NCBI GenBank assembly: GCA_977016875.1
Contig: CDRNST010000008.1
Location: forward strand, 744,001-808,000
Length of the DNA stretch: 64,000 nucleotides
Origin: Pavona decussata
Lineage: Eukaryota
Direction: 5' to 3'
Position numbers and translations under genes: made by a program. The first letter of the stretch is position 1, and each line of letters begins with the position of its first letter. Below the pieces are notes generated by a model. The model had not been told where the DNA came from, ran no database searches, and saw nothing but the letters and a program-made list of their open reading frames with translations. This document shows positions 16,501-20,400 of the stretch, piece by piece.

Positions 16501-16893
16501 TGAATGCCTAATATACTATCTGATCTGGCAATTCTACTTTTGAGTTGACACATTGAAGTGATCTTTAACATGAAGTCCTGCAAAGACGGATTTAAGGTGT
16601 TATTTCTGTATTAAATAAGCAGATATGTTGCTTCCAAATAATTATCAGTAAATGATTCAACAATCAAGAATATTTAGGTTCCCGGTTGTGGTTGACAAAC
16701 AGGATGTTTATCAAAAGTAGACGTGAAAACTGCAAAGGACCGCGAACGATAATGCTGTCAGTTGACGTAGGATCTACAAGAGACCTAATCAGCCAAAAAT
16801 AAACTGTAACACAAACTGCAAGGCTGATACTACGTGAAAGAGTTGACTTTGCGAGACAACAACCCGACAGAAACCGACAAAACAGGGCTGCAA

Positions 16894-16936
16894 CCGTGGA
16901 CAGCTGTTTCGTTCTTATTGGAACTCGTCAGCACGG
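16894..16936 (-). ncRNA. Minimal type I hammerhead ribozyme (mirror copy)
   Basis: Exact reverse complement of 17379-17421. Confidence 0.8.
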
Positions 16937-17378
16937 TGTAGCAGTTCTATATGAAACCAGCAACAGAGCCAGCTCAAATAAAATGCAACAAAACCCATGT
17001 CCTATCAAGTTTCGTACTTTGAACCTGCCCGCTCCCCGAATCACGCGTTGCCACACCACGTGCCTCAGGGAGAAAGCAGACAAAGCATCGAATTCCTGTC
17101 TCGCAAAGTCAACTGAATGTAGATGGCCAAGACCATGGCCTTTTAAGCATGGTTTTGTCCATGCGTTTCAATGTTCAGATGGTCTTGGCCATCTACATTC
17201 AGTTGACTTTGCGAGACAGGAATTCGATGCTTTGTCTGCTTTCTCCCTGAGGCACGTGGTGTGGCAACGCGTGATTCGGGGAGCGGGCAGGTTCAAAGTA
17301 CGAAACTTGATAGGACATGGGTTTTGTTGCATTTTATTTGAGCTGGCTCTGTTGCTGGTTTCATATGGAACTGCTACA

Positions 17379-17421
17379 CCGTGCTGACGAGTTCCAATAA
17401 GAACGAAACAGCTGTCCACGG
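17379..17421 (+). ncRNA. Minimal type I hammerhead ribozyme
   Basis: ccgtg-CTGACGA-gttc(caataa)gaac-GAAA-c(agct)g-TC-cacgg: canonical CUGANGA/GAAA/UH core, stems I and II, 2-bp stem III with a palindromic AGCU loop. Confidence 0.85.
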
Positions 17422-20400
17422 TTGCAGCCCTGTTTTATCAAAAGTGTTTGAGGATTTTGTAGAACTGGCACATATCAAGTATCCGGATAAAAAACCTAAT
17501 AAAAGGCGAGCTACGGATCATAGACTGGACTGAAAAACAATGAGGCTCGGTTGTTGTTCCTCTCTTGTCAACGACTCATACTCGTAGGCGATCGTTTTGC
17601 ACCACCACCACCACAACAATTTATTTACAAATTCAGATTATGACGAGCACGAGAACATAACGGGAAAAAAAATTACAATAAATTACAAACATGCTGGAAA
17701 ACGGAAAAACTTAACTTTACATAATAACGCACATTTAGTTTTTATTATCATTAATATTACAACAGAAAAGAGATGAAAAGGGAAAAGGAGAATCAAATTA
17801 TACTAGCAAAGAGAGGGACATGGATCTTCCTAAATCGCAGCGCTCAGGAAATCTCTTAATTGTAATGGACTGTTTTTCGGAACTTCTATGTTTTGGGCCC
17901 ATCGTATCTAATAGGTACTATATTGAACTCCTCTTCAATACCGAGTCAATATGATAGTATTATACCTGATTTGGGCAGGAAGTTTATCAAAATTGTTGGG
18001 GGATTTCGTGGAACTGGTACATATCAAGTGTCCGGATAAAAAACAACTTTGTTCATTGGTCAATATCGTCACATGACTTACGTGGCACACCTAAAAAGGC
18101 GAGCTATGGATCATCGACTGGGCTGAAGAACAATCAGGCTCGGTTGTTGTTCGTTTCGACAATTGTAAAGCCTGGTGTGGTATAACGACGACTCTTCTAC
18201 CCACAAGTCGTGCCTTCCGAGTCAACAGGAACAAGAATTCAGTCGCTCCTTCAGCTGATTTTAGAATCGCAGTTTAGAGTCTATAAACCTCGAACCACAT
18301 TGAACCAAAGGTATTTTCCCTTAATCAGTCAATATTTAAGTAATTTACGCCATCTTGAATTTTGCTATAGTTAGGCATGTTTTAGATGTTTGTCTTTTCC
18401 CTATCGGTAACATGAGCCTGGTTTTTACTGGTGACACAATCACAAGCATGAACGGTTAACTAAAGACTTCTGTAGCATGTGAAAAAGAAAAAAACCGCGA
18501 GCATCACACGAAATATTCAGTGACAAAATTAAATTTTGACCAATTGTTAAATGCAGGCTTTTGTGCCGTTTGTAACGAAATTAATCCAAATGAAATTAAA
18601 ACAGGCAGGTATGTTTTTTATCCTTGACTAAAACCTCAGTCAAAACTCGGACAATCCGGCAAGGCTTTATAACTTGAAAGTGAGCATAATTATTTTGGCC
18701 ATTAACGCCCTTACTTTCTCTCCGTTCAGATTACCAAATGACAAAGTTTAAGGTCCGCAATGCAACATAGTAATGTTCGGGATGGTTTGAATGTTTCAAC
18801 CATTATACCTATTCTGTAAAAAGATTTCGGCGGTGCCAAACCGTTCTCTCCAGAAAGAGTTTTAAACGAGCGACGACGGGCAACGGACAGTGTTATCTTG
18901 AAAATTTTAATTATTAGAGAACGTGACTCCAATGCAATAAGGGAGCATTTCTCGGAAGCGACACGTGCATGGTTCTTGGTCAAAATAAAAAATAATAAAA
19001 GCAGTTGAGGTTTTTTGTAGAACTAGCACATATCAGGTATCTCTCTATAAATAGTTTTGTCTGTAATACGATTGGCCAAGAGTATCTCAATGGGGCACAC
19101 CCCTTCTTGCTACGAATTCGCATTTACTAAAGGTACACGTCGACATTGCAGCACTCTACCAAACAAAAGTCAAGTTCACCCCGATCTCCGTTGTTTTAAA
19201 GACCAAGTTTTGACTCAACAACGCCTCTTGTTTAGAATCTTTGAAATCTTCAAAGTCACTGGTAAGAATTCGTTCGCCTTCTTAGTTGATTCTAGAATCA
19301 GTAGATAGTTTCATAAACGCCAGTAATTCAGTTAAAATTGAAACTGCGTCGATTCGAGGTGTTTCCTCCCGACTGTGTGATTTCCTTTTTATAAAATCGG
19401 TAAGTGGACTTGAAATTCCTATTTTTTGAACATGTTTGCCTTTCCTCTGTAGGTAAATCCTGGTTTTCACTGGTAACGTAACCATTTAGGCGCATTTGAT
19501 CATATGCATATGCGCATGTTAATTTGCGCCATACAAATATTAATTATTATTATAACCGCAAGCAACGAGGATAAGCACCAGCGCAAGAGTTCGATGGTGA
19601 TTGTAAGCAAACGGGTGGAGATAAGCACAAGCACAAAGAGTTCGCTGGCGACTGTAAGGAACGACTGGACATAAGCATTAGCACAAACAAGGAATATTCA
19701 TTAAGAAACACGGCATTTCGCTTGTTAAATCCTTGTTTGGGGAATTTATCGCTAAACTGACTGTCAGAAAACAGGAATATAGTTTCGATAATTTGATCAC
19801 GTCTGCATTTCTTTCCGCATTGCAGTGAGGTTATAATCATCACTGAACACAATTCGGAAAATCAAGGTCTTAAAACTTCAAAATAGGCCTAACGATTCAC
19901 GAATTAGTTTTTGAAAAAGTCCTCGCTATTGCAAGAAATTTCTTTTAAAATAATTCAGCCCAGTAATCCTGTTTTTTCCCTTGTACTGTTATTGCAGAAG
20001 GAGGCAAGCATAAGCACAAACACTATGGTCACAATATCAGTAATTCACAATATTTCGATTGTTGTGCTTGTAATTCTTGTGCTCGAGTCAAACCTGTTCA
20101 CTTAATTTTGAAATAGAGGCTTTATAGATTTCGTGTTCTTATGCTTTCCCTTGTTCTGGCCGAGACAGACAAAATCAGGCTTCCGCAGAATAATCTGGTG
20201 TATCCTGCATTACCTAGCTGAAGTGTTCCAAATTATTTCGCCGAAGAAATATCACCTCCCCAAAGTTCCAGCCGCAAGAAGGAATTTTGTGGGAAATGCT
20301 TCCCAACATACCCAAAGCCGCATTACTCTATATGCTTAACTTAGTTTGGTTTCTTGATTTCATCAATTGCAGTACAACCTCTCTTGTCAACCAGTCATAC

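Follow-up and report, generated by a model that had tools for sequence, protein, structure and literature searches.

The closest described relatives of the element reported here are the animal retrozymes, repeats of ~170–400 nt that include a 220–245-nt family of Acropora millepora, in whose genome more than 6000 type-I hammerheads fall into 16 families (Cervera & de la Peña 2020, PMC7229834). Animal retrozymes have been linked to Penelope-like elements (PLEs) (PMC7229834; bioRxiv 10.64898/2026.07.22.740005), and vertebrate retrozymes have been argued to derive from the pseudo-long terminal repeats (pLTRs) of PLEs in a preprint where inverted forms go undiscussed (bioRxiv 10.64898/2026.07.22.740005). 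PLEs themselves are marked by an inverted, 5′-truncated copy and a one-sided tail, and the mechanism of their integration is still undefined (Craig et al. 2021, PMC8557442). In addition, the hammerheads of newt and salamander satellites act as dimers, according to Forster et al. 1988 as cited in PMC4209133. Here we describe a palindromic, hammerhead-bearing insert in a 64,000-nt stretch of Pavona decussata DNA (assembly GCA_977016875.1, contig CDRNST010000008.1, positions 744,001–808,000, forward strand), hereafter the window; coordinates without a locus or contig name refer to it.

The 715-bp insert is likely a single recent retrotransposition product of a hammerhead-bearing 505-nt retrozyme, which a PLE would have copied in trans with its reverse transcriptase (RT) and GIY-YIG endonuclease. 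The evidence comes from the make-up of the insert itself, from an abundant family of 505-nt units elsewhere in the genome, and from a 3′ tail that this family shares with a coding PLE.

The palindromic insert and its target site

A repeat search of the window found an inverted repeat at 16876–17136 / 17179–17439, with arms of 261 nt that are 99% complementary and lie 42 nt apart, in keeping with the near-perfect 258-bp inverted repeat of the original prediction, which a model had made from the letters of the window. The insert corresponds to ~1.4 units of the 505-nt family, and one 12-bp target-site duplication, also anticipated, flanks it as a whole. Numbered along one natural unit of an array on contig C486, from cleavage site to cleavage site and with no consensus used, it resolves into the following parts:

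16707–16718, no strand: left copy of the target-site duplication, TTTATCAAAAGT; its last 5 nt (AAAGT) are complementary to unit 181–185, a microhomology at the putative priming site
16719–17136, minus strand: left arm, 418 nt, unit 268→505→1→~180, ending at the canonical 3′ terminus of the family, ..CAGTTTTCACGTCTACT (blastn against the C486 unit, 98.7–99.5% identity)
16719–16805, minus strand: 3′ tail module, unit 94–180, present in the left arm only (homology to the end of the 3′ untranslated region (UTR) of a coding PLE)
16841–16858, minus strand: unit 41–58, one half of an 18-nt inverted repeat within the unit; the partner, unit 290–307, lies at 17097–17114 (left arm) and 17201–17218 (right arm)
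16893–16937, minus strand: type-I hammerhead, predicted to cleave between 16899 and 16898 (Rfam RF00163, 39.4 bits, gathering score 34)
17137, no strand: one filler base where the two arms meet head-to-head (blastn-derived coordinates and sequence)
17138–17433, plus strand: right arm, 296 nt, unit 227→505→1→17 (blastn against the C486 unit, 98.2% identity)
17378–17422, plus strand: type-I hammerhead, predicted to cleave after C17416 (Rfam RF00163, 39.4 bits)
17434–17445, no strand: right copy of the target-site duplication (sequence and repeat search)

In these coordinates, the 42-nt spacer and the 157-nt "5′ piece" are ordinary stretches of the unit, namely unit 227–267 of the right arm and unit 24–180 (tail included) of the left arm. 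The 18-nt repeat between 16841–16858 and 17201–17218 is real, and its earlier attribution to template switching falls away: the inverted repeat is intrinsic to every unit of the family, and its halves pair in the predicted RNA fold.

The two arms end differently on the outside. The left one stops at a terminus that recurs in ~30 loci of the family; the outer end of the right one is non-canonical and has a 3-nt microhomology (TTT) with the target site. Between themselves the arms differ at 1 of 255 comparable positions, the single visible difference noticed at the outset, and they have in common three variants relative to the C486 unit (273 T>C, 393 G>A and 442 C>T). The shared variants, the near identity of the arms and the one target duplication therefore argue that one event produced the insert from one template. 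Nesting of two independent insertions was also considered and rejected, on the grounds of the one duplication and the private variants common to both arms.

The surrounding DNA is made of a repeat family local to contig C8; its copies, 72–94% identical, lie at ~13.6, 16.0–16.3, 17.4–18.2, 20.4–21.2, 44.4 and 51.0 kb of the window, and it probably belongs to a gene region duplicated in tandem. Intact paralogues of the target site, without an insert, occur at 16247–16264 and 17977–17994. Furthermore, contigs from runs X1 and X2 join 16710 directly to 17443 and have one variant copy of the target site, that is, an empty site. The flanks of these contigs are 96–98% identical to the window, as against 86% for the closest paralogue within the genome, and we read them, from these identities, as the orthologous locus in other individuals that lack the insertion. 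The insertion is therefore recent, as had been supposed from its near-identical arms.

Both strands of the palindrome carry a complete hammerhead, and the Rfam check bears this out: the matches to RF00163 (Hammerhead_1) clear the gathering score and cover model positions 1–45 of 45 on either strand, and they are the only Rfam matches at gathering score across the 64-kb window. The core reads CUGACGA / GAAA / GUC, with 6 bp in helix I, 4 bp in helix II and 2 bp in helix III, the last closed by the palindromic loop AGCU. On its sequence, this is the canonical metazoan type-I form of tandem repeats and retrozymes, and not the "minimal" form of PLEs defined in PMC4209133, to which the original prediction had assigned it; the minimal form sits in the 3′ UTR of the coding PLE. 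The suggestion that so short a helix III calls for a dimer fared better. In the folding calculations, the native fold of the monomer reaches −6.6 kcal/mol as against −12.5 kcal/mol for a non-native minimum-free-energy (MFE) structure, and two co-folded copies are predicted to form a double hammerhead with an 8-bp intermolecular helix III (dimer MFE −29.1 kcal/mol). This predicted fold matches the account that PMC4209133 gives of canonical metazoan type-I hammerheads in tandem repeats.

What the window copy could still do appears to be little. Each strand's transcript holds one hammerhead, and in the RNAfold prediction for the window transcript all 45 of its 45 bases pair with their antisense in a long hairpin (about −570 kcal/mol), the self-inhibition that had been foreseen. 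With one hammerhead per strand there is no second cleavage site on the same strand, and therefore no unit-length RNA would be released. Since its single hammerhead would be buried in the hairpin on either transcript, the window copy is probably inert, dead on arrival; at most, the folding leaves it as a possible source of double-stranded RNA.

Matches to MIR1444 and other miRNA families at the centre of the palindrome score 19–32 bits, where the gathering scores are 80–117; a miRNA identity was rejected, and these sub-threshold matches are generic hairpin hits.

The 505-nt family and its Penelope-type tail

With the insert as query, the genome to which the window belongs (602 Mb in 1180 contigs) was searched, and 159 matches came from 895 first-pass candidates. 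Insert positions 1–418 alone have more than 100 matches at 97–100% identity, arranged head-to-tail in arrays whose period is exactly 505 bp. The C486 array that supplies the unit coordinates (L031 1522–7511; G000:C486:2780021–2786010) has 12 hammerheads spaced exactly 505 bp apart over 12.4 units, 11 full units being 100% identical, so that it is either very young or homogenised; it terminates at unit 93 and has in addition a 143-nt inverted piece ending at unit 183.

Each 505-nt unit contains one canonical type-I hammerhead. The longest ATG-initiated open reading frame (ORF) in a trimer of the unit is 52 aa, and the GC content is 45.7%. As a circle, the sense unit folds to an MFE of −187.6 kcal/mol, compared with −139.5 ± 6.9 kcal/mol for dinucleotide shuffles (z about −7), with 68% of bases paired; the antisense unit folds to −137 kcal/mol, no better than shuffles of the sense strand. 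The copies are dispersed over different contigs, are flanked by target duplications of 9–12 bp, and lack a long terminal repeat (LTR), a primer-binding site (PBS) and a polypurine tract (PPT). Contigs from runs guessed to be RNA span the unit and continue into the next one, with the limits that these runs could be low-coverage DNA and that contigs cannot show ends or circles. Thus the family shows properties by which retrozymes are recognised, namely tandem non-coding units, a type-I hammerhead, target duplications above 4 bp and a self-paired RNA, and it is a non-coding, non-autonomous metazoan retrozyme of the non-LTR kind; the properties are those of the family, the window copy being inverted and not tandem. 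At one retrozyme insertion, a tRNA gene lies no more than a few hundred bases away (L036 1043–1114).

Candidate suppliers of the enzymes are at hand. The genome holds at least 150 GIY-YIG matches, drawn from 933 candidates, and the PLE family that was sampled (20 loci, L037–L056) encodes RVT_1 and GIY-YIG domains. A core-pattern search finds a minimal hammerhead, CTGAAGA..GAAATATAGTA, ~150 nt past the stop codon in 17 of the 20 loci (for example L053 1117–1461, minus strand); its helix II is long and its helix III all but absent. An Rfam scan of the same 20 loci at gathering score found no hammerhead, so Rfam misses the PLE type. Not more than a few hundred bases from one PLE copy stands an inverted pair of tRNA genes (L037 314–386 and 634–706).

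Downstream of the minimal hammerhead, the 3′ UTR of the PLE aligns to unit 64–160 with 64–68% identity (E = 3e-7), and in a multiple alignment the similarity among the PLE copies breaks off in the very column that holds the end of the retrozyme. When the unit was compared with the PLE loci by direct blastn, two weak, short matches came up, and there was no similarity outside the ~100-nt tail; the link surfaced only with sensitive settings limited to the 3′ UTRs and by way of an intermediate. The intermediate (L007 3120–3418; G000:C142:1430067–1430365) represents a young, high-copy element, with at least 811 first-pass candidates at 98–100% identity, whose hammerhead is minimal and PLE-like and whose tail is 80% identical to unit 102–173. 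It is also found head-to-head at C28:1327695/1328063 and C366:210197/210559, and in L007 it lies within a ~70-nt minisatellite. At least three further hammerhead families (L060–L065) have a hammerhead 80–84% identical to that of the 505-nt family, followed by a tail 70–76% identical to unit ~60–170; an inverted arrangement was seen in L060, L063 and L064 as well. When nine tails were aligned, taken from PLE copies and from five or six non-autonomous hammerhead families, the consensus folded into nested stems in which 4 of 25 pairs are compensatory. Taken together, there is moderate evidence, from sequence comparison, that the tail is a module recognised by the PLE enzyme, and a PLE family that is a closer partner may exist.

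The original prediction had gone further and taken the insert for the pLTR of an autonomous PLE. On such a reading, an autonomous element would have been truncated and an inverted pair of pLTRs left behind after loss of the ORF. In its favour, this genome is rich in PLEs, the terminal regions of PLEs hold hammerheads (PMC4209133), and inverted pLTRs are a form that PLEs adopt (PMC8557442). However, all related copies found are 505-nt non-coding units in head-to-tail arrays, without an ORF; tblastn of the PLE proteins against 32 hammerhead loci gave no match; the type of hammerhead differs from the minimal one of PLEs; and the similarity between unit and PLE is confined to the tail of ~100 nt. 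We therefore regard a truncated PLE as highly improbable. With no ORF in the unit and no PLE-protein match in its loci, the element is not a PLE, though it is inserted in the manner of one. Thus, what survives of the earlier Penelope link is retrotransposition of the Penelope type, seen in the architecture and in the tail shared with a PLE that has RVT_1 and GIY-YIG.

Two proposed priming sites and the head-to-head junction

When ~30 loci of the family were mapped onto the unit coordinates, exactly one end fell at unit 178–188 (..TTTGCAGTTTTCACGTCTACT) in every locus except L086. The target duplications vary in sequence from locus to locus, and the "simple" copies are truncated at a variable point opposite the fixed end. 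Such a combination of a fixed 3′ start site and variable 5′ truncation is typical of target-primed reverse transcription. Roughly half of the insertions mapped, including at least 13 loci besides the window, have an inverted arm as well, and in 14 of 14 inverted arms outside the window the outer end falls at unit 90–99. The arm that ends at 183 can be as short as 20–35 nt (L082, L074), and the arm that ends at 93 can reach 12 units (L031). Since one end lies at 183 and the other at ~93, the segment 94–183 appears as a "tail" at one end only. The family thus has the hallmarks of PLE insertion, that is, 5′ truncation, an inverted 5′-truncated copy, a one-sided tail and a 3′ end shared with a coding PLE, and its inverted arms with their one-sided tail are an insertion form of the Penelope type, of a known kind. 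The motif TTGCAG occurs three times on the sense strand of the unit (6, 78 and 164) and nowhere on the antisense strand, each time 12–19 nt before one of the three observed termini.

For the window copy, these coordinates suggest the following course of events. Staggered nicks 12 bp apart would provide two DNA 3′ ends. One of them would prime cDNA synthesis at the canonical end of the tail, at unit ~181–185 with a microhomology of 5 nt, and copy 418 nt. The other would prime at unit ~17–20 of the same RNA, multimeric or circular, with a microhomology of 3 nt and just past the TTGCAG box, and copy 296 nt; this unit-17 end might be a slip to the third, weaker TTGCAG start site. The two cDNA ends would then be joined head-to-head with one filler base, in the style of twin priming. 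In the twin priming of L1, reportedly described by Ostertag and Kazazian in 2001, an inverted 5′ segment is joined to the 3′ segment within one target duplication.

A palindrome could also arise by snap-back, if the first cDNA folded and copied itself with no second priming. One independent insertion of the same family has the form that fold-back synthesis gives: in L032 (2033–2798; G000:C53:543032–543797) there is a perfect palindrome centred on unit 260, with a 2-nt overlap and outer ends at unit 93 and 183. Overall, this copy matches the window insert at 94% identity, and the duplication at its target site is a different one. In the window, however, the arms meet at the centre 41 nt out of register (268 as against 227), and the left arm reaches unit 180 where the right arm stops at unit 17. 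From these coordinates, the offset and the unequal reach mean that neither cDNA could have templated all of the other arm. Furthermore, the recurrent outer end at unit 90–99 in 14 other loci points to a defined second start site. Self-copying of the first cDNA is, in our view, unlikely.

Several observations weigh against the account of the insert given here. First, the palindrome junction rests on the assembly alone, as no independent short contig crosses 17136–17138. Second, the window's second end lies at unit 17, unlike the 14 other inverted arms with their ends at unit 90–99. Third, the tail's similarity to the single PLE family sampled is weak (64–68%), and the covariation term in the consensus fold of the tails is small (−0.12 kcal/mol).

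The first of these observations bears on whether the palindrome is an artefact, produced by a chimeric long read or by the collapse of two neighbouring copies. Runs X1 and X2 show the empty site only, and structures of this sort are known to trouble assemblies (PMC8557442). Against an artefact stand the clean 12-bp duplication, in flanks whose nearest paralogue within the genome is only 86% identical, and the differing outer ends of the arms; the three private variants common to both arms; and the like structures at no fewer than 13 further loci, where junctions and target duplications differ. An assembly error is thus scarcely credible, and the insert is better explained as the product of retrotransposition from a retrozyme RNA.

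How the second start site would be chosen is a more tentative matter. The two recurrent termini, 183 and 90–99, bound the structured tail module that PLEs also possess, and TTGCAG precedes each of them. This suggests a possible arrangement, to which we give less credence than doubt, in which a PLE ribonucleoprotein would hold the tail and both nicked strands would prime at its two RNA edges (unit ~183 and 90–99). The "tail" would then simply be the segment between two defined start sites.

A second, unrelated palindrome was seen in the window at 9191–9601, with arms 9191–9273/9519–9601 (83 nt, 93%) and 9277–9309/9486–9518 (33 nt, 94%). It has no Rfam family match at E ≤ 1, and a hammerhead there is unsupported by Rfam.

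Comparison with retrozymes, Penelope-like elements, L1 and dimeric hammerheads

In most respects the family resembles the retrozymes of PMC7229834. It has a non-coding tandem unit with one type-I hammerhead and low GC, without LTR, PBS or PPT, and with target duplications of more than 4 bp; its arrays range from partial units to multimers, the RNA of the unit is predicted to be self-paired, and PLEs with hammerheads occur alongside. Unlike them, it has a unit of 505 nt, which exceeds 170–400 nt, and it is known here from sequence and folding alone. The window copy also departs from the arrays described there, in that it consists of 1.4 units head-to-head and has no pair of hammerheads on the same strand.

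As an insertion, the element behaves like the PLEs of PMC8557442: there are 5′ truncation, partial tandems, an inverted 5′-truncated copy abutting the 5′ end, a tail at one end and variable target duplications, and a coding PLE of this genome has a 3′ tail homologous to that of the family. It differs from them in having no RT/GIY-YIG ORF, a tail of ~90 nt instead of 30–40 bp, and a canonical type-I hammerhead instead of a minimal one.

With L1 twin priming, the insert has in common the microhomology at the priming sites and the small filler at the internal junction. Unlike in L1, the template would be a repeated or circular RNA, so that the arms share sequence and a palindrome results, and the second start in the 505-nt family is usually fixed (unit 90–99), not random.

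As for the newt and salamander hammerheads, in so far as PMC4209133 presents them, the likeness lies in the 2-bp helix III, the palindromic loop and the predicted double hammerhead with its 8-bp intermolecular helix III. Unlike those dimers, the window copy lacks a second hammerhead in cis on the same strand, and its dimer is known here from folding alone.

Therefore, the palindrome is a clear example of a known insertion form, made by a member of a retrozyme family with a larger unit. That unit would extend the published size range of animal retrozymes. Because the family is young, abundant and short, each of its insertions records both junctions of a Penelope-type event, and the rule that ends fall at 183 and 93 could feed a genome-wide test of the two-site priming model. 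If true, priming at two edges would explain both the inverted repeats of Penelope-type insertions and their one-sided "tails".

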